From IMG/VR virus record IMGVR_UViG_3300036944_001289, positions 1-64,000 of that record: a stretch of 64,000 nucleotides of DNA; one strand, 5' to 3'. The notes beneath the pieces are model-generated. The model saw only the letters and a program-made list of their open reading frames with translations, searched no databases and was not told the DNA's origin. The position numbers were made by a program, and so were the translations under genes. Position 1 is the stretch's first letter. Each line of letters begins with the position of its first letter. Positions 28,523-51,388 of this stretch are shown one piece after another.

Positions 28523-28554
28523 AATGTATAATAATATTGTTCCAGGTTACATTT

Positions 28555-31910: not shown

Positions 31911-31965
31911 AATAATATGTTTGGTTGTAAAAACATATTATTAAAGTTCCCGCGATTTAAAAATA

Positions 31966-34294: not shown

Positions 34295-34336
34295 GTTAAT
34301 ATTTATTCACTTGTAAGAAAACCCGCAATGTTAACT

Positions 34337-34951: not shown

Positions 34952-34969
34952 TTGTAATAATAATAATAT

Positions 34970-35422: not shown

Positions 35423-35440
35423 ATATGTTATTTACTATAT

Positions 35441-35986: not shown

Positions 35987-36050
35987 ACGTATATTTAGTG
36001 GAACTTTAACCTAATAATACATATTATTAGTTATTTGATTAAATAATACT

Positions 36051-37478
36051 ATGGGATCATTTGATTCAAATGTAGTGGTAAATTATCAGACTTTAGAATA
36101 TAATAAGTTTATACAAATAACTAACAATACTCAATTCCCTCCTGTTTCTGTAGTACGATTTAGTTCGCCTGATACAGTAGGGGTACAACCAGTTAGTTCA
36201 ATGGATGTATATTCTAAATACGCTGTTCTGGTTAAAAATGTTGATAACACTACTGCAAATTATACCGGTAACTTGAATATGGCAAGTGATGCGTTTGGTC
36301 GTACAAGAACATCTAGTCCATTAACTCTTTTTGATTCATCATTTAGATATGGTGATAACAGTCTTTGGTCTAATCTTACAGGTGGTACTACATCGACATC
36401 TGCTTCTGCTCAATTTATTCAAGCTCAAGGATTAATAGAGTTAAGAGTCGATGCATTAAGTGGTTCAAAAATATATAGAGAGACAACAAAAGTATTTTCT
36501 TATCAACCGGGTAAGAGTCTTCAAATAATGAATTCATTTAGTTTCAATCAAGCTAAATCTAATTTAAGACAGCGCACTGGTTATTTTGGTAATGATAACG
36601 GTATATATCTAGAATTAGATGATAGTACGCTTTATATGGTTGAACGTAGCATTACAAGCGGTTCAGTTGTATCTAATCGTATATCACAATCACAATGGAA
36701 TGTAGATCGACTTGATGGTACAGGTCCATCAGGTATTATTTTAGATATTACTAAATCACAAATTTTGTTTGTAGATATAGAGTGGCTTGGTTTAGGTACA
36801 GTTAGAACAGGCTTTATTATAAATGGTCAGTTTATACCTTGTCACTATTTTCATCATGCTAACGTAATTGATGTCACTTATATAACTACAGCTTCACTAC
36901 CTCTTAGATATGAGATAGAAAATAAAGCTGCTACAGCAAGTCCTAGTAAATTGAAGCAAGTATGTAGCACAGTAATATCTGAAGGTGGTTACGAATTAAG
37001 AGGTTTACAACAATCTGTTGGTACATTAATAACCGCACCAAAGAGTCTTGTTACAGCAGGCACATACTATCCTGTAATAACCATAAGATTGAGACCAAGT
37101 AGATTAGATGCTATTGTCATTCTAACAGCAATATCGTTAATGGGTGATGGTACAGGTATTTATAGTTGGAAGGTTATTGCTAGTGGTGTTTCAGCAGGTG
37201 GTACCGGTACATGGATAGATGCAGGTGGTAGCTCTTCTGTACAGTATAAACTTGACGCCACTAGTATAACAGGTGGTAGGGTACTAGCATCTGGTTACTT
37301 TAGTTCTAACGCTCAAGGTTCTACAACAATAGATATATTGAAAGAAGCTTTATTTAAGTTCCAACTTGAGAGAAATAGTTTTACCGGTGAATCTTATGAA
37401 CTAACACTTGCTGTAACAGCAAGTACTGATGTTGAGGTTGTTTACGGTTCTGTTGATTGGGAAGAGGTAAGTAGATAA
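36051..37478 (+). CDS. Virion structural protein
   Basis: DAFGRTRTSSPLTLFDS, YQPGKS, WNVDRLDGTGPSG, EWLGLG.VR.GF motifs; TAAATA upstream. Confidence 0.75.
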   Translation: MGSFDSNVVVNYQTLEYNKFIQITNNTQFPPVSVVRFSSPDTVGVQPVSSMDVYSKYAVLVKNVDNTTANYTGNLNMASDAFGRTRTSSPLTLFDSSFRYGDNSLWSNLTGGTTSTSASAQFIQAQGLIELRVDALSGSKIYRETTKVFSYQPGKSLQIMNSFSFNQAKSNLRQRTGYFGNDNGIYLELDDSTLYMVERSITSGSVVSNRISQSQWNVDRLDGTGPSGIILDITKSQILFVDIEWLGLGTVRTGFIINGQFIPCHYFHHANVIDVTYITTASLPLRYEIENKAATASPSKLKQVCSTVISEGGYELRGLQQSVGTLITAPKSLVTAGTYYPVITIRLRPSRLDAIVILTAISLMGDGTGIYSWKVIASGVSAGGTGTWIDAGGSSSVQYKLDATSITGGRVLASGYFSSNAQGSTTIDILKEALFKFQLERNSFTGESYELTLAVTASTDVEVVYGSVDWEEVSR

Positions 37479-37491
37479 TTTATTCTTTGTT

Positions 37492-37568
37492 TGGTGCTCA
37501 GGGAGGGATTTGAACCCATCACTATTCGGCTTCTAAGACCGACGCCTCTACCGTTGGGCTACCTGAGC
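37492..37568 (-). tRNA. tRNA-Leu(UAG), short variable loop
   Basis: Cloverleaf, TCGGT-CT TAG AA-GCCGA, CCA encoded. Confidence 0.85.
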
Positions 37569-37697
37569 ATATCCGTTACTTATCGGGCGAACGGAACGAA
37601 GGCCATATCCGAAGCCATAAGGCTTGGAGGTTACGGTTACAGAAGGCGAACTGCTGGACTTGCCTTGTTGAGTCGAACTCAGCCATTACCGTCAAAT

Positions 37698-37773
37698 TGG
37701 TCAGGAGCCAGAGAATCAAACTCTGCCACCCAGGTTCACAGCCTAGTATGCTAATCACTACATCATCTCCTGA
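37698..37773 (-). tRNA. tRNA-His(GUG)
   Basis: CTAGG-CT GTG AA-CCTGG; U-1/A73 rather than G-1/C73. Confidence 0.8.
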
Positions 37774-37871
37774 TAAAAGCTTTCGGTAAGTTTCTTCCCC
37801 TATACGGCTGAAATTGAAGTCATTCAGTTGTTCCAAGGTTTACACCACCAGCTTCAATTCTGGTCCGAAAG

Positions 37872-37947
37872 TGGAGCACCAGGTCGGATTTGAACCGACA
37901 TGAATCAGGGTTGCAATCTGAGCCGTAGCCTTTCCGGTCACTGGTGC
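37872..37947 (-). tRNA. tRNA-Cys(GCA)
   Basis: TCAGA-TT GCA AC-CCTGA, U73, CCA. Confidence 0.85.
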
Positions 37948-38022
37948 ATATTCTTTCGGATTGCAATTCCATCCGCCGAACTCAACGGCAGCATGCCTTG
38001 GTGCCAGATGGCCGAAAGAAAG

Positions 38023-38101
38023 TGGTGGGGGCAACCGGAATGCGAGCCGGCATTTTACCTGTGAGAGAGGTATGTCCTTTACGTTTTTAGACGATGTCCC
38101 C
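38023..38101 (-). tRNA. tRNA-Glu(CUC), atypical T-loop
   Basis: TACCT-CT CTC AC-AGGTA, CCA. Confidence 0.75.
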
Positions 38102-38329
38102 ATAAATTGAGAACTTTTCAGTAGTATCGGTGATTAGACTTTCTGAAAAGAAAGAACAGACTTAAATCTAAAGATATACATCTTGGTTTCACCTACCATT
38201 GTTCTATTCTCAAATTTGTAGTTCGACCGACGGGATTCGCACCCGCGGGCAGACACTTTGCCAGCTTCTCTGCCTTACTAAACGGCGTCACGATCGAACA
38301 TACTCGAAGATAATTAGTCTTCGAGAAAG

Positions 38330-38405
38330 TGGTGTCCCGTGGAAGAGTCGAACTTCCATCGTTCGGTCCGTAGCCGAAGGTTCTGATCCATTGAACTAAC
38401 GAGAC
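38330..38405 (-). tRNA. tRNA-Arg(ACG)
   Basis: TTCGG-CT ACG GA-CCGAA, CCA. Confidence 0.9.
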
Positions 38406-38411
38406 ATAAAG

Positions 38412-38487
38412 TGGTGGAGAATACCGGCTTTGCTCCGGTCACCTATTGCTTGCAAAGCAATTGCTCTACTGAATGAGCTAACTCCCC
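38412..38487 (-). tRNA. tRNA-Ala(UGC)
   Basis: G3:U70, TTGC-TT TGC AA-GCAA, CCA. Confidence 0.88.
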
Positions 38488-38518
38488 AATAAACTCTCCC
38501 TGAATTATGCTTCAATGC

Positions 38519-38554
38519 TATAATGTAAGTAATTGCGCAATTACTTACATTATA
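38519..38554. repeat. Perfect 36-bp palindrome
   Basis: tataatgtaagtaattgc|gcaattacttacattata. Confidence 0.9.
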
Positions 38555-38588
38555 TTATGCATGAGAGGCACAGAGAGACTACTAAAAA

Positions 38589-38936
38589 TTATTGCTCTTT
38601 AAGCTTTCTATCAACATACGTTTTAAGATACTCTTTTAATTGAGATTTGTCTTGCCTTTTATCTCTCTCGATTATATTATCTATATATGTAAATAAAAAC
38701 TTTTGAGCTTCTTCTAAGCTACTTGTTGTAAACGTCTCACCATATGGCACGTTACGGAAATCATTAGATCCATTGACCAAAGGTAAGTACGTACCATCAT
38801 CTTTTTTTGTAACAGAGAGACGTCGACATTTATAATCTGGATACACCCAATTGAAAGGTTGTTGTTCTATATCAAGAACAACATGCCATTGATTTGGTTT
38901 ATCGAGTAAAGGACATCTGTATCTAGCTTTTCCCAT
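38589..38936 (-). CDS. hypothetical protein
   Basis: GGAAC-N5-TAAAAT motif upstream. Confidence 0.6.
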   Translation of the reverse strand: MGKARYRCPLLDKPNQWHVVLDIEQQPFNWVYPDYKCRRLSVTKKDDGTYLPLVNGSNDFRNVPYGETFTTSSLEEAQKFLFTYIDNIIERDKRQDKSQLKEYLKTYVDRKLKEQ

Positions 38937-38959
38937 ACCAAATTTTATTTTTGTTCCTT

Positions 38960-39148
38960 CTAACAGTGGTAATTAATAAATCTATTTGCTTGTTTCTTAG
39001 TAAGTGTGTCTCTACTTGAAGTAAAAGATCTTGCTTTAGAACAAGTTATCTTACCTTTACCAAAGCGTTTAGTTACCTTTGCTTTAAATCTTCCAGGATG
39101 TCTAGCTTTATGTATATTGGCTTCAAAAAATAAACTAAACGTGATCAT
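38960..39148 (-). CDS. Small basic protein, possible internal head protein
   Basis: MITFSLFFEA N-terminus; K/R-rich. Confidence 0.55.
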   Translation of the reverse strand: MITFSLFFEANIHKARHPGRFKAKVTKRFGKGKITCSKARSFTSSRDTLTKKQANRFINYHC

Positions 39149-39543
39149 TTTATTCTTAGACCTTCTGCTCTTAGAAATTTAAAGAAACTGGGTGCATCGT
39201 TTTCATATTTATCGTTAATTTCTATACTCATCTTATCTGTAGTCTTAGGGTTTGTACCTACTAATATCATCGTTATCTCTCTACTATCTTCAAAAGTATC
39301 TATAGCGTAAAATATGTTTAGAGGTTTTTCTTCTAGTTTTTTAATGATTGCTTGCTTTTTATCGTGTCTATTCAAACCGACAATACTTACTGTATCTTCT
39401 AAACTTTTACTAAAAAGACGTTGTATAGTGTTGTCGTAATCATCAGCCATCCAGAACATTATATAATAATCATCTGTTGTATCGTATCTTTTTGTAAACG
39501 CTATTTCAGTTAGATACTTTTCACTTATAATCTTGTCTTCCAT
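39145..39543 (-). CDS. Late protein, hypothetical
   Basis: TAAATA before MEDKIISE. Confidence 0.55.
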   Translation of the reverse strand: MEDKIISEKYLTEIAFTKRYDTTDDYYIMFWMADDYDNTIQRLFSKSLEDTVSIVGLNRHDKKQAIIKKLEEKPLNIFYAIDTFEDSREITMILVGTNPKTTDKMSIEINDKYENDAPSFFKFLRAEGLRIK

Positions 39544-39578
39544 ACTATTATTTATTAGATACAGTATCAATACAAAAA

Positions 39579-39673
39579 TGGCGGAGGGTGAGGGAATTTA
39601 ACCCTCACCGGCTTTTAAGGTCCGGTTTTGTTTAGCAAACAAATGTAGCAAGAACAATATCTACCTACCCTCC
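39579..39673 (-). tRNA. tRNA-Ser(GCU)
   Basis: TTTGT-TT GCT AA-ACAAA, long V-arm, G73, CCA. Confidence 0.85.
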
Positions 39674-39676
39674 AAA

Positions 39677-40009
39677 TTATTTTAGCTTAATAAGGCACTC
39701 ACCGTATGCTTCAAGTTCACCTGTTACTTTTTGAAATTCAGCCTGTGTCATACTCTTCCAACTTCTCAGTTTAGAAAAGCATTGATCTGCTTTAGATTCA
39801 ATAAATTTTGGATTCTCTATATTTTTAATACATTCTTTGTATGGTATTTCTTTTGCTTTAAAGTGTTGAGCTGTAAGCAGTGATGGACCACCTTTTGCTC
39901 TTGCAGATGCTTCTATCTTTTTTGCACCTTTAGATCTAACATTGAAAAATTCTTGATTCTTTGCATCAAGGTTGGATAGAGTCTTTTCTATTAGAAGATC
40001 AAAATTCAT
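39677..40009 (-). CDS. Late protein, hypothetical
   Basis: TAAATA before MNFDLLIEKTL. Confidence 0.6.
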   Translation of the reverse strand: MNFDLLIEKTLSNLDAKNQEFFNVRSKGAKKIEASARAKGGPSLLTAQHFKAKEIPYKECIKNIENPKFIESKADQCFSKLRSWKSMTQAEFQKVTGELEAYGECLIKLK

Positions 40010-40020
40010 TTAATTATTTA

Positions 40021-40350
40021 TTAATCTATCTTTTGCAAAGCTATTCTATACATGAAAGATGTTGCACCGCCAGGGTATATATTAAGATGTATTACCTTTA
40101 GTTTCACTCCTTGCTCTTCAGCTAATTTAAGTATATTTTTTGTATATAAATTACCTGCTTTTGCAGCAACTGCATAATGCTTTTTAACTGTCTCTTCTTT
40201 ATTTTTACGTTTAGCTAAACTTCTGATTATATTAGAATCCGGATTATCAGGGTTAATATAAAGATTACTATCAGGTGTTATATAATCTTCATACTTTTTA
40301 AGTACGCTACCTTCGCGTGATAACATACTTTGTATCATGTGTTTACCCAC
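40021..40350 (-). CDS. Late protein, hypothetical
   Basis: TAAATA upstream. Confidence 0.5.
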   Translation of the reverse strand: MGKHMIQSMLSREGSVLKKYEDYITPDSNLYINPDNPDSNIIRSLAKRKNKEETVKKHYAVAAKAGNLYTKNILKLAEEQGVKLKVIHLNIYPGGATSFMYRIALQKID

Positions 40351-40376
40351 TATTATATTTAGTTAAGAAATAAAAA

Positions 40377-40450
40377 CATCCAGCGTAAGAATCGAACTTA
40401 CCGCATTGAGTTTTGGAGACTCTATCGCCTACCTTGGAACATGGCTGGAT
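40377..40450 (-). tRNA. tRNA-Trp(CCA), CCA end not encoded
   Basis: GAGT-CT CCA AA-ACTC, T-arm GTAAG-TTCGATT-CTTAC. Confidence 0.8.
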
Positions 40451-40453
40451 AAA

Positions 40454-40527
40454 TGGTTGGCCTAGAGGGAATTAAACCCCCATTTCTCGCTAATCAGGCA
40501 AGCACACTATCATTGTGTTATAGGCCA
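40454..40527 (-). tRNA. tRNA-Ile(GAU)
   Basis: CTTGC-CT GAT TA-GCGAG (U37), CCA. Confidence 0.8.
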
Positions 40528-40528
40528 G

Positions 40529-40604
40529 TGGCTGGAGCTCTCGGTATCGATCCGAGATCTTCTGCTCTTCATGCAGACGTGAGCACCTGCTTCACCAAAC
40601 TCCA
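40529..40604 (-). tRNA. tRNA-Phe(GAA)
   Basis: TCTGC-AT GAA GA-GCAGA, CCA. Confidence 0.8.
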
Positions 40605-40796
40605 ATATGAGTTATTTAATAATCTACAGTGTCAACTCATCCACTGCAATGTCGTTCAATCTCTCCGAACTGTCAAGCCTTCTCTTCGTTGGATCAACGG
40701 CGGCTTTCCCTAAATTATTCCAATATTCAGACTTTTACTGCACTCTTTGATCATCACGACTATTGGAAATCGATGTGTTTTCTTTGTTAACAAAAA

Positions 40797-41087
40797 TTAT
40801 TTAAATTCCGAACTATCATATACATTACATAATAATGTAGCAAGTTCTTCTACTACATCTATTCTTTTTTCGTTTATTGGAGCATAATGACATCCAACAA
40901 ACTCTAAATCATCTATTAATTCACCAAGTAATCTATCCTGACTTTTTTCTCCATTTATAAAAACGGAATATGTTATTGCTCCAAAATTTATAGGATCTCG
41001 TTTTGCAACGAATTCAACATCTTTTATAGATGGATTTTTTTCCTTCATTTTGACTTTAATACGTTCAAGCGTTTCGTTTCTATTCAT
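40797..41087 (-). CDS. hypothetical protein
   Basis: ORF directly downstream of tmRNA. Confidence 0.55.
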   Translation of the reverse strand: MNRNETLERIKVKMKEKNPSIKDVEFVAKRDPINFGAITYSVFINGEKSQDRLLGELIDDLEFVGCHYAPINEKRIDVVEELATLLCNVYDSSEFK

Positions 41088-41091
41088 AAAA

Positions 41092-41479
41092 TGGTGGAGG
41101 TGGCGGGAATTGAACCCGCGTGTTTAACCCAAACCTCACTATTATCTACAAGCTTAGTAGTATTTAATAACTATTTTAAGGTATACTACAACCTGTAGAT
41201 AGTGGTATACATTTATATACTAGAGAATCCCAATGTATAACTGACTCTCTAATCTCACTATATAACGAAATTAAATTTTAGTGAGAATCAAATCTAGTTT
41301 CGATCGCTGTTTATTAAGCAGCGAATGCAAGGGCCTCAACAGGAGCAGCGCTCTTGAAGAAGTTCTTGATGTAATTTACAATGTTGCCATTTGTAGTTTT
41401 GATACTAGTTATAGAGATAATATCAATCTCTGCTTGCAAATAGAGCTGTATCGAATTAAGTCGAATCCTGTACACCCCC
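41092..41479 (-). ncRNA. ssrA: tmRNA
   Basis: 5' GGGGGTGTACAGGATTCGAC, 3' CGCGGGTTCAATTCCCGCCACCTCCACCA with G3:U70; internal tag ORF ...GNIVNYIKNFFKSAAPVEALAFAA*. Confidence 0.93.
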
Positions 41480-41604
41480 ATAAATTGGTCCCAAGTAAGG
41501 GTCGTCAATCTTACAATCCTACTATTACGTTTGGATGCCCTCTACCAGAGCCCAATCGAAAAGGGTCTAGTTTTTCCGGATTTCTACCGTACAACCTGAG
41601 AAAA

Positions 41605-41682
41605 TGGTAGGAGATAAGGGGCTCGAACCCTTCTGTTAATCGCTATGTAAAAGCGGTGACCAACCCTGCAGTCCCATCTCCT
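41605..41682 (-). tRNA. tRNA-Val(UAC)
   Basis: CGCT-TT TAC AT-AGCG, CCA. Confidence 0.8.
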
Positions 41683-41688
41683 GTAAAT

Positions 41689-41767
41689 TGGTGCATCAGA
41701 TGGGATTTTAACCCATGTAAATCTCGTTAAGAGCGAGGACCGTTAAACGAACTCCGGGCACTGATGC
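41689..41767 (-). tRNA. tRNA-Lys(CUU)
   Basis: CTCG-CT CTT AA-CGAG, CCA. Confidence 0.8.
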
Positions 41768-41858
41768 ATAAAGGTAGCAACATTAGGTCTTTGCTTTCCT
41801 ATAATTTCCTTATACCTGACTTAGCGCTGAGTATTATAGGTTAGTTGCTTTCGCAAAA

Positions 41859-41934
41859 TGGAGCATCGTGTGAGATTCGAACTCACGGAATCCTCTTTGG
41901 AAGAGAGGCGCACTAACCACTATGCGAACGATGC
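41859..41934 (-). tRNA. tRNA-Gly(UCC)
   Basis: CCTCT-CT TCC AA-AGAGG, U73, CCA. Confidence 0.9.
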
Positions 41935-41994
41935 ATAAATTACACGTACCCATTATTCACATTGATAACAAGAGGTATAGTACGTATGTTAAAG

Positions 41995-42087
41995 TGGAGG
42001 AGAGTGAGGGATTTGAACCCGTCGGGGCTTTTGAGGACCCTTCTATTTTCAAGATAGATGCCATAAACCGTACTCGGCCAACTCTCC
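41995..42087 (-). tRNA. tRNA-Ser(UGA)
   Basis: TCTAT-CT TGA AA-ATAGA, long V-arm. Confidence 0.85.
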
Positions 42088-42094
42088 ATAAAAA

Positions 42095-42169
42095 TGGCTG
42101 CCCGCCGTGGTTACGATCCACGCTCACCTGATTAACAGTCAGGGGTACTCGCCAGAATACGAGCAGGCA
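42095..42169 (-). tRNA. tRNA-Asn(GUU)
   Basis: CCTGA-CT GTT AA-TCAGG, G73, CCA. Confidence 0.85.
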
Positions 42170-42176
42170 ATAAAAA

Positions 42177-42266
42177 TTTATATCTAATGTTCTACCATGT
42201 TGAACTATCCTCCTTGTTCTATTGGGTAAGAGAGGAGCGGACCTTGAACCCGCATCTTTAGATAAA
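42177..42266 (-). ncRNA. Circularly permuted tRNA-like RNA without anticodon
   Basis: ATCTAA, T-arm GCGGG-TTCAAGG-TCCGC, TCCTC/GAGGA acceptor closed by a loop, D-arm GTTC-AACATGGTA-GAAC, TTAGAT. Confidence 0.7.
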
Positions 42267-42326
42267 GAGACTGGGTCTGCATAACAGACCCGAAAGCTCA
42301 CTGTACGCTTGGTACATGAACAAAAA

Positions 42327-42401
42327 TGGCGCTCCCAGTAGGGCTCGAACCTACATAATACGGCTTAGAAGACCGGTGCCTATCCATTAGACTATAGGAG
42401 C
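42327..42401 (-). tRNA. tRNA-Arg(UCU)
   Basis: CGGT-CT TCT AA-GCCG, CCA. Confidence 0.88.
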
Positions 42402-42406
42402 AAAAA

Positions 42407-42493
42407 TGGTGCGTCGGGAGGGACTCGAACCCTCGATGGGTTTAAACCGTGAGCTTAAAAGGCTCGACCTTTCGCCGCTAAGGGAACCGACGC
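42407..42493 (-). tRNA. tRNA-Lys(UUU) with long variable arm
   Basis: GAGC-CT TTT AA-GCTC, then CGGTTTAAACCCATC extra arm. Confidence 0.75.
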
Positions 42494-42502
42494 GTAAAAA
42501 AC

Positions 42503-42640
42503 TAAGTATATTTTTTGCGTTTACTGTGCTACCGTTACACTACTCTCCAATAAAGTATAAATTGGGTGGAGAGGTGGGAATTGAACCCACACTAGCATCT
42601 GTATATGATGATTGCGTTTTATTTTTGCTGTATATACTTA
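42503..42640 (-). ncRNA. Y-RNA-like (YrlA-architecture) RNA: CAGCAA terminal stem + permuted tRNA domain
   Basis: TAAGTATA/TATACTTA stem, TACAGCAA, T-arm GTGGG-TTCAATT-CCCAC, CTCTCCA/TGGAGAG acceptor closed by a loop, D-arm GTGT-AACGGTA-GCAC. Confidence 0.8.
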
Positions 42641-42643
42641 AAG

Positions 42644-42722
42644 TGGTACCCTAGGTGAGATTCGAACTCACACTGAAGAGTGTTTAAGACTCTGGCCATA
42701 CTACCAATTGGGCTACTAGGGC
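42644..42722 (-). tRNA. tRNA-Leu(UAA), short variable loop
   Basis: AGAGT-CT TAA AC-ACTCT, CCA. Confidence 0.85.
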
Positions 42723-42731
42723 GTAAAAAAA

Positions 42732-42807
42732 TGGAGTCTCGTATAGGAATTGAACCTATGTAATTTCTTTTGCAGAGAAAAGCCTGTAACCACTCGACCA
42801 ACGAGAC
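42732..42807 (-). tRNA. tRNA-Cys(GCA), second copy
   Basis: TTTCT-CT GCA AA-AGAAA, U73, CCA. Confidence 0.87.
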
Positions 42808-42813
42808 ATAAAA

Positions 42814-42890
42814 TGGTACCGATGAGCGGGATCGAACCGCCAAGCTTCTCCGTGAAAGGGAGGTGTCCTAACCAATTAGACGACATCGGC
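42814..42890 (-). tRNA. tRNA-Glu(UUC)
   Basis: CTCC-CT TTC AC-GGAG, CCA. Confidence 0.87.
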
Positions 42891-42902
42891 ATAAAAAATT
42901 TC

Positions 42903-42964
42903 AAAGTCCGTTTTTAGCTTGTATTGATTAATATTCAATTGCTTTTGATTGCTGTGCGGACTTT
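42903..42964 (-). ncRNA. CAGCAA-motif small RNA 1
   Basis: AAAGTCCG-CA-CAGCAA...AAAAA-CGGACTTT. Confidence 0.7.
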
Positions 42965-42970
42965 TATTAC

Positions 42971-43024
42971 TAAGTTCAGCTTTTTGTTGTATTCAATGAC
43001 ATTTAGTATTGCTGGATGAACTTA
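42971..43024 (-). ncRNA. CAGCAA-motif small RNA 2
   Basis: TAAGTTCA-TC-CAGCAA...AAAAAGC-TGAACTTA. Confidence 0.7.
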
Positions 43025-43027
43025 AAT

Positions 43028-43099
43028 TGGGTGCAGCGCTGGTACTCGAAACCAGAGAAGGTAGCTTATGAGACTCCTTGGGCAACCTGCCTCACTGCA
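43028..43099 (-). tRNA. tRNA-Met(CAU), atypical short D-arm
   Basis: CT CAT AA loop, TGCAGTG/CGCTGCA acceptor, CCA. Confidence 0.65.
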
Positions 43100-43167
43100 A
43101 TAAATTGGCGATGTAACTAATCTGAAATATTGACTTGTAAGCGTTCTTACCGTTACATTATTAAATA

Positions 43168-43243
43168 TGGTGGTAGAGGTGAGACTTGAACTCACAAATA
43201 AGAGCTTATGAAACTCTTGCCTAAACCGTTCGGCCTCTCTACC
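43168..43243 (-). tRNA. tRNA-Met/Ile2(CAU)
   Basis: AGAGT-TT CAT AA-GCTCT, CCA. Confidence 0.85.
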
Positions 43244-43244
43244 A

Positions 43245-43338
43245 TGGTAGTCAGGGAGGGAATTGAACCCTCGCTCGGCACCAATCTAGTGCTCACGGTT
43301 TATAAGGCCGTCGATGCTTCCAATTACATTACCTGACT
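43245..43338 (-). tRNA. tRNA-Ile(UAU) with long variable arm
   Basis: ACGG-C-CT TAT AA-A-CCGT, V-arm GCACTA-GAT-TGGTGC, CCA. Confidence 0.8.
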
Positions 43339-43344
43339 ATAAAA

Positions 43345-43418
43345 TGGCTGAGATGGCTGGTAACGCTCCAACTTCTTCGGGGTCAAAGTCCGAGGTAATA
43401 CTTTTATACGACATCTCA
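43345..43418 (-). tRNA. tRNA-Gln(UUG)
   Basis: U1:A72, CT TTG AC loop, G73, CCA. Confidence 0.82.
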
Positions 43419-43425
43419 ATAAAAT

Positions 43426-43511
43426 TGGTACGGTGTGAAGGAGTTGAACCTTCAAGGCTCATGCAGTCTAAATGCATACTGTCTGCCAAATTCCAGCTTA
43501 ACCAACACCGT
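43426..43511 (-). tRNA. tRNA-Leu(UAG), second copy, enlarged D region, no long V-arm
   Basis: ATGCA-TT TAG AC-TGCAT, CCA. Confidence 0.72.
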
Positions 43512-43518
43512 AATAAAA

Positions 43519-43592
43519 TGGTCCTCCACCTCGGTTACGCTCCGAGTCCTTTCCGCCCCAAACGGGAAATGCTACTATAACACCTGTGAAGG
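43519..43592 (-). tRNA. tRNA-Pro(UGG)
   Basis: CCG-TT TGG GG-CGG, C1:G72, A73, CCA. Confidence 0.78.
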
Positions 43593-43599
43593 ATAAAAA

Positions 43600-43675
43600 T
43601 GGCGATGGTACGGGGAAATTGAACCCCGACTTGAACAGTGACAGTGTTCTGTGCAAACCTTTACACTATACCATC
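43600..43675 (-). tRNA. tRNA-Asp(GUC)
   Basis: GAACA-CT GTC AC-TGTTC, G73, CCA. Confidence 0.88.
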
Positions 43676-43683
43676 GTAAAAAC

Positions 43684-43737
43684 TAAGTCCATTTATTTAC
43701 CTTATTGTAGTATTTTAATGGTTGCTGTCTGGACTTA
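43684..43737 (-). ncRNA. CAGCAA-motif small RNA 3
   Basis: TAAGTCCA-GA-CAGCAA...AATAAA-TGGACTTA. Confidence 0.7.
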
Positions 43738-43741
43738 AAAA

Positions 43742-44545
43742 TTATTTGATAGAGAAGTATTTTTTCCATTGTTTATATCTTGGAGATCCACCTTCTCGTT
43801 TATTAGCACCTTTATAAAATTGAGATAGTGAATGGCAGTTTGGACACAACAACTCTAAATTATCTGGAATGTTATTAATGCAATTACCATCTTTATGTTC
43901 TAACTCGATCGGTACTTTACCTGAAAAAGGATTTACTTCGGACCAACCACATTTCATACACCTTGGTCCAAATTTGCGAATTAAGTATCTTCTATATATT
44001 GTGTTATTTGTTTCAATATTTTGAGAAATAACCTTTCCTTCGATTAATAGTGGTTCTAATTCTTTTTCACGCTGGTTTTTTCTGTGTTCAGAAGAGCATA
44101 TTTGTTCACAAAATATTGACGTTTTTGCTACCGGTAAGAAGTCTCGTTCACAATTTAAACACTTTTTGTATTCTTTATATCTTAATGCAGGACCTCTTTT
44201 AAGGAAGCGATTATTGCTAATAAAATTTTCTGTATTTTTATGAACTTTGTTACAAACTCTTGTCTTGTTGATTGTTGTAGCAGCACAACTATTAGAGCAA
44301 AATTTATTTTCGTAACTAAAAAAGGAAATGTTACATGTCAGGCATACTTTTGTATTTTCTTCTATTATTTTTTGCTTTTCTTTTTCTTTACAAGAAGGAC
44401 AATCAAATTTATCTACGTTATGTTTTATATTATGCTTAATATAAATTTTAAGTCTTTTGGTTTCTGTTCCACAATCTTTACACCAGCAAGTAACTGAATC
44501 TTTATTTGTCGCGTTATCGAATTCTTCTTGGTTGAATTTATACAT
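43742..44545 (-). mobile_element. Free-standing HNH homing endonuclease in the tRNA array
   Basis: Multiple CxxC motifs; C..CGW...ELEHKDGN..NN...NLELLCPNCHS. Confidence 0.85.
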
Positions 44546-44591
44546 TTAATTATTTATTCATAAAATGGAGCTTTCAAGAGATAGTAATAAG

Positions 44592-44668
44592 TGGATCCCC
44601 CAGTCAGGTTCGAACTGACAACTTCCCGCTTACAAGGCGGGTACTCTACCAATTAAAGTTATGAGGGA
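44592..44668 (-). tRNA. tRNA-Thr(UGU)
   Basis: CCCGC-CT TGT AA-GCGGG, CCA. Confidence 0.88.
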
Positions 44669-44758
44669 ACAAAAAGGCAAGAAATGAATTTTTGAGAGTT
44701 TTATCGACAATATTCGTCGCATATTCAGCTAAAAGCGGTGTAGTCGCTCCCAAAAAAA

Positions 44759-44844
44759 TGGTGCCGCTGGCAGAATTCGAATCTGCAAAAACTCTACGTT
44801 CTCAACGTAGTAACTGTACCAATTTGTATTATTGTCACAGCGGC
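44759..44844 (-). tRNA. tRNA-Leu(GAG), enlarged D region, no long V-arm
   Basis: CTACG-TT GAG AA-CGTAG, CCA. Confidence 0.75.
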
Positions 44845-44850
44845 GAAAAA

Positions 44851-44944
44851 TGGTAGGAGTAGCAGGAATTGAACCTGCGATGTTTACCCAGAGGGACTTG
44901 ATTTACAGTCAAGTGCAGCACGACCCAGCAGCTACCTTACTCCT
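44851..44944 (-). tRNA. tRNA-Tyr(GUA)
   Basis: CTTGA-CT GTA AA-TCAAG, V-arm, A73, CCA. Confidence 0.85.
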
Positions 44945-45141
44945 ATAACCCGGCTATTTATAGCGTCCGGGGCCGCTAACGACGTTTAATAATGTCGTCA
45001 AACCAAACAAAGAACTCTACTCTCAACCTCTCTCACTTACCTTTCTCAGGTGTGGTTTAGGATGCTGATGGATTTTCTTCAGCGTTCGTTGATTTACCTT
45101 CGCTCAACTTTAAAGCGTTGTATTAACTAAATTGTAAAAAT

Positions 45142-45157
45142 ATTTTAAGTATGTTCC
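45142..45157 (-). promoter_or_regulatory. GGAAC-N5-TAAAAT promoter motif heading the tRNA array
   Basis: Same motif at 11 other intergenic positions on the minus strand. Confidence 0.65.
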
Positions 45158-45164
45158 TTGGCTA

Positions 45165-45200
45165 AATAAAAAACCCTAAGCTTTTCTTAGGCTTAGGGTT
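45165..45200 (-). terminator. Intrinsic terminator (candidate attenuator)
   Basis: AACCCTAAGC-CTAAGAAAA-GCTTAGGGTT-TTTTATTT. Confidence 0.85.
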
Positions 45201-45223
45201 ATCATATAGAATATGGAAATTCT

Positions 45224-45322
45224 TTATTCTAACCCTAGGTAATCGCATATAGGTAGATTACCATAAAACGCTTCACTTGGGCGTCTTTGTAATTTACTTG
45301 TAATGGACCATATTGTTGTCAT
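45224..45322 (-). CDS. Putative 32-aa leader peptide MTTIWSITSKLQRRPSEAFYGNLPICDYLGLE
   Basis: Starts just after TAAATA; its 3' end (TAGGGTTA) is complementary to the terminator 5' arm. Confidence 0.6.
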   Translation of the reverse strand: MTTIWSITSKLQRRPSEAFYGNLPICDYLGLE

Positions 45323-45397
45323 ATGTTTAATTATTTATTCAAAAGAACTAACTTTCAACACCACTATTTTAAAAAAAGTTCCTTCTTTGAAAATTTA

Positions 45398-46021
45398 TTA
45401 TTGTATTGGATATGGAGTAACAGTAGGTGCAGGAGAGGCGCCAAATACTGAAGTAAAAGATCTAGTCCATGGGTTGATTATATTATATGGAGAAATCAAT
45501 CCAGACAAATTGTTTTCATATAGTTGTGTAGCTTCAGAAGCTATAATCCATACGCCATTTGCTCCTGAATCAGACTTATAGATACTGTAAAATACGTTTC
45601 CATCCATAACATAAAAAGGAAAATTATTATAGACACCGTCAAAAATGTATATTCCATTTGCCGCGGCTGTTCCTGCTCCAGATACTTGAACAGAATATGC
45701 AACTGATACTTCAACTGGTGGTGGGTTGAATGCATCTAAAGTAGATTGCCATGTAGTATTCAATGGAGTTGTTAAATTTGGTTGTGTGGTTACATACAAT
45801 ATTTCTGTTGATACCTCTATTACCCATTTTGCATCAAATGATCTGTAATAAATTTCATAATTTGATAAATTAGTGTAATAAGGTTTATCATTGCGTGTCC
45901 CAGTAAGAGTATATAAACCATTTCCTAAAGCAACACCAGCACCTGATACCATGATATATGTATATTCCACTGTAGAATCTTGTTGGTTACAACAGAAAAC
46001 ATAAAAGTCTTTAATAGTCAT
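45398..46021 (-). CDS. Virion-associated protein with two VSGAG...NG.Y modules
   Basis: Internal duplication; TAAATA upstream. Confidence 0.6.
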   Translation of the reverse strand: MTIKDFYVFCCNQQDSTVEYTYIMVSGAGVALGNGLYTLTGTRNDKPYYTNLSNYEIYYRSFDAKWVIEVSTEILYVTTQPNLTTPLNTTWQSTLDAFNPPPVEVSVAYSVQVSGAGTAAANGIYIFDGVYNNFPFYVMDGNVFYSIYKSDSGANGVWIIASEATQLYENNLSGLISPYNIINPWTRSFTSVFGASPAPTVTPYPIQ

Positions 46022-46113
46022 GTGATTAAAATATTTATGATATAGCTGTTAGTATTGTTTTTAATACTTGACCACGACAGATTATAAAAAATTCTTTAGG
46101 TATCATAAAATTC

Positions 46114-47556
46114 TTAATTAAACTTTCCGATACCGTATAGAGCATTATTTGTTTTATATATGTATATACCGCTAAATTGTGTACTATTTTTATTACTTGT
46201 AGCACATAAATTATTTACTTGTGTAGATGATATGTAAACTGTATTTGTACCAATATTTGTTATTCCCACGTTAAATCCGTTTGGCAAGATACCTGGAAAG
46301 ATTGCTGATATTGATCCAGATGCAGTGTTAAAGTTGAATATCTTAGAGTTGTCTGCAGAATAGCTAAATGTTTTAGTGGTTGTTATATTGGTTACGTTTA
46401 CGTCAGATATAACCTCTCGTGCTGTTAATGTATTTATATTTGCATTAGCAGCTGTTATTACACTTACATTTGCATTAGTAGTTGTTAGATTATTGGTATC
46501 TACAGATGAAGCTACTAATCTATTTATATTTGCATCAAATGCTGTCAAACCTTTAGATGAAACACCTATACTATACGTATTACCGTTTACAAAAATAGTA
46601 TATGTTACATCTGTTAGTTCTGATAGTGTTGTGGTATCAAATAATGTTGGTCCATCTATATATATTTGGCCATCTTGAAGATTATATGCATTTGCACTAA
46701 TTTTAGGTGAAAACCTATTATATCCGTTCCATTCTAAATCCCTTCCTACATTTATATTAGTTGCTGTAAGTGTCTGAGCGGATAGACTTTTTACATTTAT
46801 ATTAGTTGCTGTAAGTGTCTGAGCGGATAGACTTTTTACATTTATATTAGTTGCTGTAAGTGTTTGGGTAGATAAATTGTTAGTAATTGTAGTGCCGCTT
46901 AATACAGGATTTAAAATTGGTGCTTTGAGAGCTAATTGCTCTGTTGTTGCTAAAGTACCACTTTCAGTTGGGAGAGTAACTACGACATTACTATTTGCTG
47001 AACCATATAATTCTGTGACATTAAGTCCAAGCCTTATACTTAATATATCAGCCTGTCCATATAGAGATAAAAAATTGGTCAATACTGCCGGTGTGTAAAC
47101 GCTACTTAATGCAATTACTTCACCATCTACTGTAAGGGTTTGAGCAGATAGGCTCCTTACATTTATATTAGTTGCTGTAAGTGTTTGGGTAGATAAATTG
47201 TTAGTAATTGTAGTACCGCTTAATACAGGGTTCAGAATTGGTGCTTTGAGAGCTAATTGATCTGTTGTTACTAAAGTACCACTTTCAGTTGGGAGAGTAA
47301 CTTCAACACTACTGTTTGCTGAACCATATAATTGAGTAGCATTAAGACCTATTTGGGCAGTTAAAAACTGAGCCTGACCGTATATTTGTATAAGCCCGGC
47401 CTGAACAACACCACTTACAACAGCGCTACCTGGTATATAAAGCGTATTAAATGTAACATCATCATTAGCTCCAACCCCAAGGTTAGTGCGCGCTGCAGCT
47501 TTATTAGCTGCTTGCATAAAGTTATCGATATCTTGAGATACAATTACATCGGACAT
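46114..47556 (-). CDS. Tail fibre-like protein with internal repeats
   Basis: AARTNLGVG, TLPTESGTL x2, LSAQTLTATNINV repeats. Confidence 0.7.
   Translation of the reverse strand: MSDVIVSQDIDNFMQAANKAAARTNLGVGANDDVTFNTLYIPGSAVVSGVVQAGLIQIYGQAQFLTAQIGLNATQLYGSANSSVEVTLPTESGTLVTTDQLALKAPILNPVLSGTTITNNLSTQTLTATNINVRSLSAQTLTVDGEVIALSSVYTPAVLTNFLSLYGQADILSIRLGLNVTELYGSANSNVVVTLPTESGTLATTEQLALKAPILNPVLSGTTITNNLSTQTLTATNINVKSLSAQTLTATNINVKSLSAQTLTATNINVGRDLEWNGYNRFSPKISANAYNLQDGQIYIDGPTLFDTTTLSELTDVTYTIFVNGNTYSIGVSSKGLTAFDANINRLVASSVDTNNLTTTNANVSVITAANANINTLTAREVISDVNVTNITTTKTFSYSADNSKIFNFNTASGSISAIFPGILPNGFNVGITNIGTNTVYISSTQVNNLCATSNKNSTQFSGIYIYKTNNALYGIGKFN
46747..47330 (-). repeat. 45-nt tandem repeat (x3, about 46747-46875) plus ~170-nt duplication (46837-47007 vs 47158-47328)
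   Basis: Direct reading of the sequence. Confidence 0.85.
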
Positions 47557-47589
47557 ATAATTTATTTATTATATGTCCGATGTAATTGT
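47540..47589 (-). promoter_or_regulatory. 22-bp perfect hairpin sequestering the start codon, late promoter TAAATA at the loop
   Basis: acaattacatcggacatataat-ttattt-attatatgtccgatgtaattgt. Confidence 0.8.
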
Positions 47590-47596
47590 GTGGGTA

Positions 47597-48244
47597 TTAT
47601 TCAAGATATAAATAAGGTCGCCACTCTTCTCTTAAGATAGGTGTATTTTGTACTAAAATTGCCTGAGGTGCAATACGTCTAGGTTTTACTTCTTCACCAT
47701 TTACATTAAAAAAGGGGAAAATATTATCCTTTTCGTTATTACATTGCTTACAAGCTAAAACAAGATTAAAATCATCGTTAGTACCACCTTTTGATTTTGG
47801 AAATGCATGATCTTTTGTTGCTGTGTGATATGGTATACGCTCTAAACAATATTGACACACACCTTTATATAAATTGTATAACATTTTTAATGATGTATTA
47901 CCGTTCTTTCTTACGTGAAAACCGAAGTGGTGTGTACATCTCAGTATAGTTGGTATAGCCCAATTAGTATCTTCACCGGTAACGGGATTAGGTGCAGATC
48001 TAAGACAAGGTTGATCTTCAAATAGTTCTACTCTATTACCATACCAAGATAATGTAGCTCTTATAGCACCGTTTTTATCGTGATCAGCACCAGACCATGA
48101 AACTAAGTTACCGGATGCATCGATACCAGAGGCTCTACCAGTTATAAGATGACGTAAGGCAGCCCGAGCATTACAGAATGCAAATGCTTGATAATTCTTA
48201 TTAAGTAATAAGGTTGTCTTTGTTTCTGGTTGTACTACTTTCAT
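47597..48244 (-). CDS. HNH endonuclease (McrA-like)
   Basis: LLLNKNY, CQYC, TKDHAFPKSKGG, NLVLACKQCNNEK, EEW.PYL. Confidence 0.85.
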   Translation of the reverse strand: MKVVQPETKTTLLLNKNYQAFAFCNARAALRHLITGRASGIDASGNLVSWSGADHDKNGAIRATLSWYGNRVELFEDQPCLRSAPNPVTGEDTNWAIPTILRCTHHFGFHVRKNGNTSLKMLYNLYKGVCQYCLERIPYHTATKDHAFPKSKGGTNDDFNLVLACKQCNNEKDNIFPFFNVNGEEVKPRRIAPQAILVQNTPILREEWRPYLYLE

Positions 48245-50704: not shown

Positions 50705-51388
50705 GTGATTAATTTTGATCCTCAAACACATACTTATTCGAATAATAATGGTGAAGTATACCAATCTGTTTCGCAACTTTTAGGTAAATATAAGAAACCG
50801 TTTGATGTTGATTTTTTTAGTAGAATAGTAGCTAAGAAACGAGGTGTATCACAGCAAGTAGTAAAAGAGGAGTGGAAACAAAATACAGAAAACGCTTGTG
50901 CTTTTGGTAAAGATGTTCACTCAGTCGTAGAGAACTACTTAAAGAACGGTACTGTTGACGAACAGAATATTATAAATGAGTTCCAAAAAGTATTCCCATA
51001 TAAAAGAATAGATGTGCGTAGTGAAGTTATGTTGTGGAATGATACATACAAAATAGCGGGAACGTCGGATATTATCGTAGATATTGATGATAAATCTTTT
51101 GATGTCTTAGACCTTAAAACGAATAAGAAGTTTGATTTTTATAACAAATACAATGAAACTTTGTTAAAACCTCTAGAACACCTGCACAACTGTAAGTATA
51201 CTACATACAGCCTTCAATTATCATTATATGCATATATATACTCTATAATGACAGGTAAGAAACCTAGACAGTTAGTGGTTTTATATTGGAATAAGGTTTC
51301 TTTTGAAAGGTACTACACACCGTATATGTTTTGGGATGTAAGTGTATTATTAAAACACTATAGCAAACCACCTAACATAAATAATTAA
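50705..51388 (+). CDS. PD-(D/E)XK (Cas4/RecB-like) exonuclease
   Basis: H.Y...SVSQ, G..VH, SE, IAGTSD, DLKT, Y.LQLSLYAY. Confidence 0.85.
   Translation: MINFDPQTHTYSNNNGEVYQSVSQLLGKYKKPFDVDFFSRIVAKKRGVSQQVVKEEWKQNTENACAFGKDVHSVVENYLKNGTVDEQNIINEFQKVFPYKRIDVRSEVMLWNDTYKIAGTSDIIVDIDDKSFDVLDLKTNKKFDFYNKYNETLLKPLEHLHNCKYTTYSLQLSLYAYIYSIMTGKKPRQLVVLYWNKVSFERYYTPYMFWDVSVLLKHYSKPPNINN

Follow-up and report, generated by a model that had tools for sequence, protein, structure and literature searches.

Leader-peptide attenuators control the amino-acid biosynthetic operons of enterobacteria (trp, his, leu, thr, pheA and ilv), in which a short leader ORF precedes an intrinsic terminator, an antiterminator shares a strand with this terminator, and the position of the ribosome selects the fold, a ribosome at the stop codon favouring termination. 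In this subclass the leader carries a cluster of codons for the amino acid being sensed. Other attenuators respond to general translation stress and have a short upstream ORF with no amino-acid-specific codon run, as in vmlR (PMC9226507), mef(E)/mel (PMC4335068), the whiB7 uORF (PMC10274678) and predicted elements of this type (PASIFIC, PMC5314783); a ribosome stalled anywhere in the ORF favours the antiterminator and read-through into genes that relieve the translation problem. These elements are cellular, respond to ribosome-targeting antibiotics or starvation, and control resistance or stress proteins. T-box riboswitches also sense tRNA status and switch between a terminator and an antiterminator, but they bind uncharged tRNA directly, need no ORF, and have a conserved stem I, specifier loop and T-box sequence. 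The pyrBI leader of E. coli has a leader ORF without specific regulatory codons and depends on how closely the ribosome follows the polymerase; it senses UTP through polymerase pausing, and a closely following ribosome prevents termination, which is the opposite polarity with respect to ribosome progress. In phage T4, the tRNA cluster is likewise preceded by promoters and termination signals, although no leader-peptide attenuator is known to have been described there, and nothing relevant on its transcription control was found in the literature library searched. No published description of an element like the one presented here was found either.

The sequence analysed, hereafter the window, is a stretch of 64,000 nucleotides (positions 1 to 64,000 of IMG/VR record IMGVR_UViG_3300036944_001289). 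On its minus strand, 45382-45164 holds promoter motifs, a 32-codon ORF, an intrinsic terminator and an upstream segment that pairs with the 5′ arm of the terminator, at the head of an array of tRNA genes and a tmRNA. The observation made in the original prediction, that a short codon-diverse ORF overlaps a terminator/antiterminator arrangement in front of the array, was confirmed. Like the enterobacterial attenuators, this locus has a short leader ORF, a terminator ahead of the presumed regulated genes and an antiterminator sharing a terminator strand; it differs from them in that the leader lacks a run of codons for one amino acid and uses many different amino acids instead, the downstream genes are tRNAs and a tmRNA rather than enzymes, the element is carried by a phage, and a bypass promoter often follows it. 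Compared with the stress-responsive attenuators, the output would be the translation substrates themselves, and the leaders appear selected for amino-acid diversity. No T-box was matched by Rfam in 44700-45450 even at E up to 10, or at gathering score in 34000-48000, and the other Rfam 15 matches were at chance level, far below gathering scores.

The leader ORF runs from ATG at 45322 to TAA at 45226-45224 and encodes a peptide with 18 kinds of amino acid, lacking H and V, as had been predicted; the peptide is not on record as a called gene. The terminator at 45200-45164 consists of AACCCTAAGC, a 9-nt loop and GCTTAGGGTT followed by a T run; its 5′ arm is 45200-45191, its loop 45190-45182 and its 3′ arm 45181-45172, with a 10-bp stem of -13.8 to -14.1 kcal/mol, and the U-tract (TTTTATTT) occupies 45171-45164. 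The terminator sequence is unique in the window, and a repeated or mobile element was therefore rejected. The antiterminator pairs TAGGGTTA (45237-45230), which spans codons 29-31 and has the stop codon 4 nt downstream of it, with TAACCCTA (45201-45194) over 8 bp, and 7 of the 8 nt of the latter strand belong to the terminator 5′ arm. Hairpin H2, GGTAATC/GATTACC (45262-45238), abuts the antiterminator, and a further hairpin, H1 (45287-45265; 7 bp, 9-nt loop), lies inside the ORF. An inner hairpin within the antiterminator loop (45227-45204) combines ATA/TAT with AGAAT/ATTCT. The original prediction had the antiterminator pairing extended by AGAAT/ATTCT, but there are two AGAAT copies, and the predicted fold pairs the second one with ATTCT.

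The fold of 45150-45340 is far stronger than that of shuffled sequence (z = -5.13; 0 of 200 shuffles fold as well). With a ribosome footprint on codons 27-33, the full terminator forms with P about 0.95, whereas with no ribosome, or with one on codons 1-25, the antiterminator has P about 0.97 in all but one case (0.30 at codon 10). However, exclusivity is incomplete in this phage, because a duplicated CCTAAG lets a 6-bp hairpin, CCTAAG/CTTAGG (45191-45175; -6.7 kcal/mol), persist with the U-tract alongside the antiterminator (P about 0.98 in the antiterminated state). The switch thus toggles between a strong and a weak terminator rather than cleanly on and off. This residual hairpin is absent from all other members of the family described below.

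Promoter-like motifs flank the element on both sides. Motif P1, GGAAC-N6-TAAAAT(A), lies at 45382-45365, about 40 nt upstream of the leader ATG, and motif P2, GGAAC-N5-TAAAAT, lies downstream of the terminator at 45157-45142, so that the caveat in the original prediction about a second promoter is correct. GGAAC-N5-6-TAWWAT occurs 11 times in the window against 0.55 expected, with 9 copies on the gene strand. A motif like a T4 late promoter, (A)TAAATA (45338-45332, with TAAATA itself at 45337-45332), lies 9 nt before the ATG. In the window, TAAATA followed by 5 nt and ATG starts an ORF of 80 aa or more in 10 of 10 cases, and the 14 nt around the leader's copy are identical to those before genes 44545 and 40009. 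The start context resembles that of real genes in this phage, most of which lack a Shine-Dalgarno sequence. On the other hand, the leader ORF also has no Shine-Dalgarno sequence, and its ATG lies 9 nt after TAAATA instead of the 5 nt seen at the ten clear gene starts with that spacing; late transcripts in T4 start about 6 nt after the motif, and if the same holds here their 5′ UTR would be only 3-4 nt.

Conservation in relatives had been named beforehand as the decisive test, and the layout was found at the head of tRNA arrays in eight further distinct sequences from related T4-like phages, plus a probable tenth whose ORF is cut by the locus end. The loci are designated here by L numbers. Several were found without using the antiterminator or the ORF as a criterion: L092 through the neighbouring 207-aa gene, L095 through the HNH gene inside the array, L103 and L104 through the terminator stem alone, and L129 and L144 through the HNH-like gene upstream; all of them have the ORF and the antiterminator. 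L114, which was found with a pattern that required the antiterminator core, L038 and L036 have different stem sequences but the same layout, and L018/L016 has an antiterminator and a terminator with the truncated ORF. All lie 150-300 nt upstream of same-strand tRNA arrays, except L129, where an HNH gene is inserted in between. Unrelated contigs matching the same DNA pattern have no tRNAs, and of their 14 distinct matched sequences, 1 has a comparable ORF. The element is not universal, since none was detected at the array heads in L014, L020, L021, L068 and L098. L005 looked analogous, with an 8-bp upstream complement and an 8-codon ORF, but its 15-bp terminator dominates the fold, and this doubtful case was not counted.

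Other searches returned little. DNA searches of isolated phage genomes with the locus and the top of the array found nothing or only single tRNAs. The 207-aa gene gave only the same phage and one unrelated 35% hit in IMG/VR and JGI metagenomes, and its other homologues precede T4 gp13-type neck genes and have no array; the 480-aa fibre gene gave nothing useful as an anchor. A single-sequence nhmmer search of the first 90 loci with the leader found only self hits, and exact 20-30-mers from the leader and spacer found only the same phage in IMG/VR.

Each of the nine complete members has an ORF of 20-34 codons whose stop codon lies between 7 nt upstream and 9 nt downstream of the first base of the GGGTTA-type core of the antiterminator 5′ strand. 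In shuffles, such an ORF arises 2-10% of the time per sequence. The peptides cannot be aligned with one another; identity is 17-37%, and only Met1 and the Gly encoded by the RNA core are invariant. P1-type motifs precede the leader in L095, L103, L104, L129 and L144, the block of high identity with L092 begins exactly at P1, and the TAAATA motif is conserved before the ORF in L092, L095, L103, L104, L114, L129 and L144. L114 also has AAGGA 5 nt before its ATG. At the place of P2, the motif is conserved in L092, and L114, L036 and L038 carry a TTGACA-type promoter, but no obvious promoter is seen in L095, L103 or L104.

The antiterminator is kept by different bases. Its helices are 8-13 bp in the eight members of the sequence group called family A, and 10 bp in both L036 and L018. 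The core GGGTTA is present in 7 of 8 family-A members and is AGGTTA in L144, and the terminator stem is conserved in all of them, with compensatory changes in L114 and a G-U pair in L144. In L114, UA changes to GC and a C-G pair is gained in both the antiterminator and the terminator, which are three-way changes shared with both terminator arms, and one position specific to the antiterminator (k = -8) shows A-U, G-C, G-U and U-A pairs in different members. These comparisons rest on an anchored, gap-free register table, because MAFFT and covariance-model alignments misplace L114 by one column. A formal shuffle test of covariation on the outer helix was weak (80 of 500 shuffles as high), because the core never varies. 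All 8 differences between the window and L092 fall outside the predicted stems (P = 0.005). H1 keeps its stem with a changed loop in L092 and L129 but is not seen in more distant members; H2 is kept in L092 with two loop changes but not in L129, so it is probably not essential; and the inner hairpin shows only loop and bulge changes in L092.

These comparisons bear on two readings other than attenuation. First, the region could encode a free-standing small structured RNA of about 165-200 nt that acts in trans or is a processed stable RNA of the tRNA region, the ORF being incidental. The strong fold, the region's own promoters and terminator, the absence of a Shine-Dalgarno sequence and the restriction of differences from L092 to unpaired positions would suit this reading, as would the fact that all four differences from L092 within the ORF change the amino acid (all three codon changes are non-synonymous); T4 also encodes small stable RNAs in its tRNA region. 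However, an open frame ending at the same structural point is kept in nine diverged sequences, H1 and H2 are not conserved outside the closest relatives, only the overlapping antiterminator and terminator are conserved and these cannot both be part of one stable fold, and no Rfam family matches. This reading is therefore considered unlikely. Second, an ordinary small late gene or a spurious ORF could be followed by an ordinary terminator that insulates the array from late tail-fibre transcription, with the upstream complementarity arising by chance or as a by-product. Indeed, the element sits at the end of a late structural block of tail-fibre genes (46114-47556 and 45398-46021), the array has its own promoter in the window, and, when only overlap with the terminator arm is counted, the complementarity is not improbable in L095 and L103 (P = 0.25 and 0.66). 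Nevertheless, a functional small protein is unlikely because the peptide is not conserved, the complementarity sits at the same place relative to the stop codon in all members and is maintained by compensatory and three-way changes, a plain insulator would be selected against carrying a competitor that dominates the fold, and in most relatives the element follows an HNH-like gene rather than tail-fibre genes. This is the least likely of the readings considered.

In folds masked with a ribosome footprint on the last codons or the stop, the terminator has P of at least 0.94 in all six members modelled. Equilibrium folds without a ribosome disagree among these members: the antiterminator wins in the window and L104, the result is mixed in L092 and L103, and the terminator wins in L095 and L114, in which masking of early codons does not shift the equilibrium. 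An upstream segment that sequesters the antiterminator strand, like the 1:2 pairing of trp, is predicted in L095 and L114 but not in the window or L104, with a mixed result in L092 and L103, and this pairing does not appear to be general. A model of attenuation therefore relies on co-transcriptional kinetics.

With regard to the sensed signal, the 18 of 20 amino acids in the window leader are only mildly unusual on their own (P 0.02-0.07), and the match of its codons to phage anticodons, which had been noted in the original prediction, is not significant (19 of 32 against a gene mean of 14.5, P about 0.10) and was rejected as evidence. Across the family, however, all nine leaders exceed the random-ORF mean for kinds of amino acid (z from +0.8 to +3.0), and L114 has all 20 amino acids in 34 codons (P = 0.0014). 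Fisher's combined P is 1e-5 for 8 leaders and 8e-5 for a more conservative set of 7, although these values treat diverged homologues as independent. No amino acid occurs more than 5 times, and none occurs as a run. The idea that the leader responds to any of many amino acids thus gains statistical support across the family.

Taken together, the region is probably a ribosome-dependent transcription attenuator with a codon-diverse leader at the head of the tRNA/tmRNA array (rough probability 0.65). In this view, transcripts start at P1 and/or the TAAATA motif and carry the leader ORF. If a ribosome reaches the last 5-6 codons or the stop while RNA polymerase is transcribing the terminator, the antiterminator cannot form, the 10-bp terminator folds and the transcript ends at about 45165; if the ribosome lags or stalls earlier, the antiterminator forms first and polymerase reads on into the array. 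Because the leader has no run of one codon and uses an unusually wide set of amino acids, the signal would most likely be general elongation performance, meaning shortage of any of many charged tRNAs, and the output would be more tRNAs and tmRNA, a supply feedback. In this phage P2 would give expression independent of the attenuator, which would then add a conditional increment. The analysis itself establishes the sequence anatomy, the thermodynamic switch, the conservation of the layout with compensatory changes, the maintenance of the ORF without conservation of the peptide and the excess amino-acid diversity, whereas translation of the leader and its effect on read-through, termination itself, the coupling of transcription and translation in the host, the direction and size of the effect, the share of array expression governed and the physiological trigger are inferred from sequence alone. 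The interpretation offered in the original prediction is accordingly supported in part: its core idea of a short ORF whose ribosome decides between an antiterminator and a terminator upstream of the tRNA array survives the test of conservation in relatives, while the link to tRNA depletion or host anticodon nucleases is pure inference.

A pan-tRNA sensor in the full sense remains possible but tentative. Here the leader would sample nearly every amino acid, so that shortage or cleavage of almost any host tRNA, whether through the AT-rich codon demand of the phage or through host anticodon nucleases and other tRNA-targeting defences, would stall the leader ribosome and switch on extra transcription of the phage's own tRNA set and tmRNA, an inducible counter-defence and supply circuit built from a classical attenuator. 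Alternatively, the RNA switch may be the same but couple termination to whether the leader is translated at all, for example through ribosome availability, the timing of infection or which promoter made the transcript, and so set how much transcription from upstream promoters enters the array. Two promoter classes feed the leader, a separate promoter follows it in five members, and the default state without a ribosome differs among members. Moreover, a normal 74-aa gene in L144 ends with its stop codon inside a segment complementary to the 5′ arm of its own terminator, which hints at a more general design of translation-coupled terminators in these phages. This alternative seems unlikely, since it explains neither why the leaders carry more kinds of amino acid than random ORFs nor why the element sits specifically at tRNA array heads in every member found.

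Phage tRNA arrays are currently discussed as codon-supply devices and as a shield against host nucleases that cut tRNAs (PMC10264068, PMC11555353, PMC11464382), with almost nothing known of how their expression is controlled. A conserved attenuator at the array head would show that some large T4-like phages regulate their tRNA and tmRNA supply by feedback from the ribosome itself, through a leader that reads out many tRNAs at once instead of one amino acid, which would extend a textbook mechanism to a new target and a new sensing logic. At about 170 nt, the element makes the question of when phage tRNAs matter directly testable in standard reporter and cell-free systems, and it provides a sequence and structure signature for finding regulated tRNA arrays in metagenomes.

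The presumed regulated target (37492-44944, minus strand) is an array of about 26 tRNA genes and a tmRNA (41092-41479) with interspersed HNH genes. ARAGORN finds 24 tRNAs with default settings and 26 with relaxed settings, and a few more are found with Rfam only, so that the total is not the 30 originally predicted. Between P2 and the first tRNA lies a conserved spacer (45135-44945), presumably a pre-tRNA leader, which ends in a hairpin with TATAAATA in its loop (44971-44949). The fold of this spacer is not exceptional (z = -1.0), but it shows few differences from L092, with a central stretch of about 130 nt differing at only two positions while the adjacent tRNA-Tyr differs more, and parts of it recur in other members.

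The sequence derives from an uncultivated phage of about 209 kb (IMGVR_UViG_3300036944_001289), with a GC content of 35%, and its leader region is identical in two other samples. The genes of this phage are T4-like and include a baseplate wedge, tail fibres and a virion protein 60-62% identical to those of T4-like cyanophages, and relatives carry gp13, gp14, gp15, terminase, sheath and portal genes. No isolated phage was found to be close at the DNA level. On the minus strand, positions 37492-44944 hold about 26 tRNA genes, a tmRNA (41092-41479) and HNH endonuclease genes, and the features of the leader described below lie on this strand as well.

The sequence features of the original prediction are all present where it placed them. 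An ORF of 32 codons (45322-45224) is preceded by TAAATA 9 nt upstream of its ATG, and a 10-bp terminator with a U-tract occupies 45200-45164. TAGGGTTA, located in the last codons, pairs with TAACCCTA, which is the first part of the terminator's 5′ arm; a GGTAATC/GATTACC hairpin lies beside it, and a GGAAC-N5-TAAAAT motif (P2) follows the terminator. A second mini-ORF of 9 codons in another frame (45235-45264) ends with TAG exactly at the first bases of the antiterminator 5′ strand, which is the stop position used by the main ORF in the related contig L104. The region folds much better than shuffled sequence (z = -5.1). Although such a fold might belong to a free-standing small RNA encoded here, we rank this possibility lower than that of an attenuator. 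When a ribosome footprint was modelled at each codon, the antiterminator dominated (P about 0.97) with no ribosome or with one on codons 1-25, apart from one position (0.30 at codon 10), whereas the full terminator dominated (P about 0.95) with a ribosome on codons 27-33.

The interpretation offered with these features, a ribosome-dependent attenuator sensing many tRNAs, is only partly supported, and some details require correction. First, the array contains about 26 tRNA genes plus a tmRNA, not 30. Second, the proposed match between leader codons and phage anticodons is not significant (P about 0.10). Third, a duplicated CCTAAG lets a weak 6-bp hairpin (-6.7 kcal/mol) plus the U-tract coexist with the antiterminator, and the predicted switch in this phage is therefore between a strong and a weak terminator.

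Two promoter-like motifs are associated with the leader. GGAAC-N5-6-TAWWAT occurs 11 times in the window against 0.55 expected, nine times on the minus strand (16218-16233, 25227-25242, 28528-28543, 30609-30624, 31935-31950, 38942-38957, 45142-45157, 45366-45382 and 50969-50984) and twice on the plus strand, and usually sits so that the ATG of the next gene follows GGAAC by 20-22 nt. One copy lies about 40 nt before the leader ATG and one just after the terminator. It looks like a phage-specific promoter class with an upstream GGAAC element close to the -10, and the same motif heads leaders and array heads in the related contigs L095, L103, L104, L129, L144, L018 and L098. TAAATA followed by exactly 5 nt and ATG starts an ORF of 80 aa or more in 10 of 10 cases (gene starts at 44545, 40009, 39543, 36051, 53988, 58385 and 61686, for example). 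In T4, late transcription starts about 6 nt after the motif; if the same holds here, many late mRNAs of this phage would be leaderless or nearly so. The leader has the same 14-nt cassette as two genes of the array, but with 9 nt of spacing. Most genes of this phage lack a Shine-Dalgarno sequence, so its absence before the leader ORF says little.

The decisive evidence came from other contigs, reached by several routes. A homologue of the 207-aa gene (52% identity) sits on contig L092, in which, from the first GGAAC motif onwards, the leader, P2, spacer and tRNA-Tyr are highly similar to those of the window, far more so than the upstream gene. All 8 differences within the L092 leader lie outside predicted stems (P = 0.005), the three changed codons are all non-synonymous, and the terminator loop lacks the CCTAAG duplication. 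A homologue of the array's HNH gene led to L095, the terminator stem alone found L103 and L104, and a pattern of core plus terminator ends found L114. Homologues of the HNH-like gene at 47597-48244 led to L129 and L144, and a covariance model and a generic scan of array heads added L038, L036 and L018/L016, which have different stem sequences. All of these lie 150-300 nt upstream of same-strand tRNA arrays, except L129, where an HNH gene has been inserted in between. The unrelated contigs that matched the same DNA pattern by chance have no tRNAs, and of their 14 distinct matched sequences only one has a comparable ORF. The family sample amounts to nine complete sequences in perhaps six or seven lineages, plus one incomplete, and the element is absent or unrecognised at the array heads of five other contigs (L014, L020, L021, L068 and L098). 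A different kind of leader is found at the array heads of L098 (1-230, plus strand) and L005 (about 8300-8400, minus strand), consisting of up to three tandem copies of a (G)GAAC-N5-TATAAT promoter, each followed by a conserved GATGACATCAGCGATG-like segment, with no terminator.

The genes around the leader differ among these phages. The HNH-domain gene of 215 aa at 47597-48244 (minus strand) has a large family of homologues (105 clusters, 40-87% identity); it lies directly upstream of the leader in L103 and L144, upstream with a gap or small gene between in L095, L104 and L129, and next to tRNA arrays in a further contig, L136, and it behaves like a conserved syntenic gene, not a roving homing endonuclease. 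The 480-aa fibre-like gene and the 207-aa gene (45398-47556, minus strand) lie between the HNH-like gene and the leader only in the window and L092, and elsewhere homologues of the 207-aa gene are followed by gp13-type neck genes. The array and its leader are therefore placed differently in different relatives (mosaicism).

Every member with complete sequence has an ATG-initiated ORF of 20-34 codons, located at 45224-45322 (minus strand) in the window, L092:775-873 (+), L129:5461-5541 (+), L095:1108-1197 (+), L103:9335-9424 (+), L104:746-835 (-), L114:766-870 (+), L144:3685-3765 (+) and L038:7798-7863 (-), with one in L036. The stop codon lies inside the antiterminator 5′ strand or within 7 nt upstream of it. 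The peptides are only 17-37% identical, with Met1 and a Gly encoded by the RNA core as the sole invariant residues, whereas in dinucleotide shuffles such an ORF appears 2-10% of the time per sequence. Keeping an open frame across this much divergence therefore implies selection for translation, not for the peptide. An ordinary small gene followed by an insulating terminator is also conceivable, but we rank this reading lower.

The antiterminator helix is 8-13 bp long and is maintained with different bases. In L114, the pair next to the core changes from U-A to G-C and a further C-G pair is gained, and matching changes occur in the terminator's 3′ arm, so that the change is three-way. In L144, an A-to-G change in the shared strand creates a C-G pair in the antiterminator and a G-U pair in the terminator. 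At one position used only by the antiterminator, the members show A-U, G-C, G-U and U-A. The formal shuffle test on the outer helix is nevertheless weak (80 of 500), because the 6-nt core never varies. Of the other structures in the window, hairpin H1 within the ORF and hairpin H2 (GGTAATC/GATTACC) are kept only in the closest relatives.

Each leader was compared with random stop-free ORFs of the pooled leader composition, and all nine leaders use more kinds of amino acid than expected: 18 kinds in 32 codons in the window, 18 in 26 in L129, 16 in 29 in L095, 17 in 29 in L103, 18 in 29 in L104, 20 in 34 in L114, 16 in 26 in L144, 16 in 20 in L036 and 16 in 21 in L038. The z values run from +0.8 to +3.0, and Fisher's combined P is about 1e-5 for eight leaders and 8e-5 for a more conservative set, although these values are somewhat optimistic because the members are diverged homologues. 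In the window alone the effect is marginal (P = 0.02-0.07). Histidine is missing from 7 of the 9 leaders, and tryptophan is over-represented (2.8% against 1.2% expected).

The anatomy is that of a leader-peptide attenuator. In the most likely mechanism, a ribosome that reaches the end of the ORF would cover the antiterminator strand, so that the terminator forms, whereas a ribosome delayed earlier would leave that strand free to pair with the terminator's 5′ arm as soon as the arm is made, so that the polymerase reads on. As the leader samples many amino acids and has no run of any one, the likely signal is general elongation performance, that is, shortage of any of many charged tRNAs, and the output would be more tRNAs and tmRNA. 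What the sequences themselves establish is the anatomy and its recurrence in relatives, whereas translation of the leader, termination and read-through are all inferred, none of them being directly shown by this analysis. Equilibrium folds without a ribosome differ among members, and in L095 and L114 an upstream segment is predicted to sequester the antiterminator strand, as in the trp 1:2 pairing; the default state may therefore differ between members, and kinetics matter. It is also possible, though we rank it lower, that the same switch reads out whether the leader is translated at all, not tRNA status. The terminator after an ordinary 74-aa gene in L144 (2924-3003, plus strand) shows the same arrangement, in that the stop codon TAA lies inside GCCTAAGCT, which can pair with the terminator's 5′ arm AGCCTAGGC, and terminators that depend on translation of the preceding ORF may be a wider habit of these phages.

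The putative element would work like the attenuators of the trp/his/leu class, but it lacks the codon run that defines that subclass, and it would regulate RNA genes. Its logic is closest to that of the attenuators that sense general translation stress, namely vmlR (PMC9226507), mef(E)/mel (PMC4335068) and the whiB7 uORF (PMC10274678). It is not a T-box and matches no Rfam family. Full-text literature searches found no description of a leader-peptide attenuator on a phage tRNA cluster.

A promoter that would bypass the element follows the terminator in the window, L092 and L018 (GGAAC type) and in L114, L036 and L038 (TTGACA type), but none is evident in L095, L103 or L104. In some phages the attenuator may therefore gate most transcription into the array, whereas in this phage it would add a conditional increment. 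The spacer between P2 and the first tRNA (44945-45135, minus strand) shows few differences from L092, fewer than the adjacent tRNA-Tyr, and ends in a hairpin CCCGG...CCGGG (44971-44949) with a perfect TATAAATA in its loop. The stem of this hairpin shows a compensatory change in L104 (CCTGG/CCAGG), and it could be a processing signal or a structured promoter. The tRNA-Tyr itself (44851-44944, minus strand) is 94 nt long, falls just below the Rfam threshold (28.6 bits against 29) and shows compensatory acceptor-stem changes relative to L092, and it is followed by a weaker tRNA-like match (44770-44829, minus strand; 21.8 bits), which may be a degraded tRNA.
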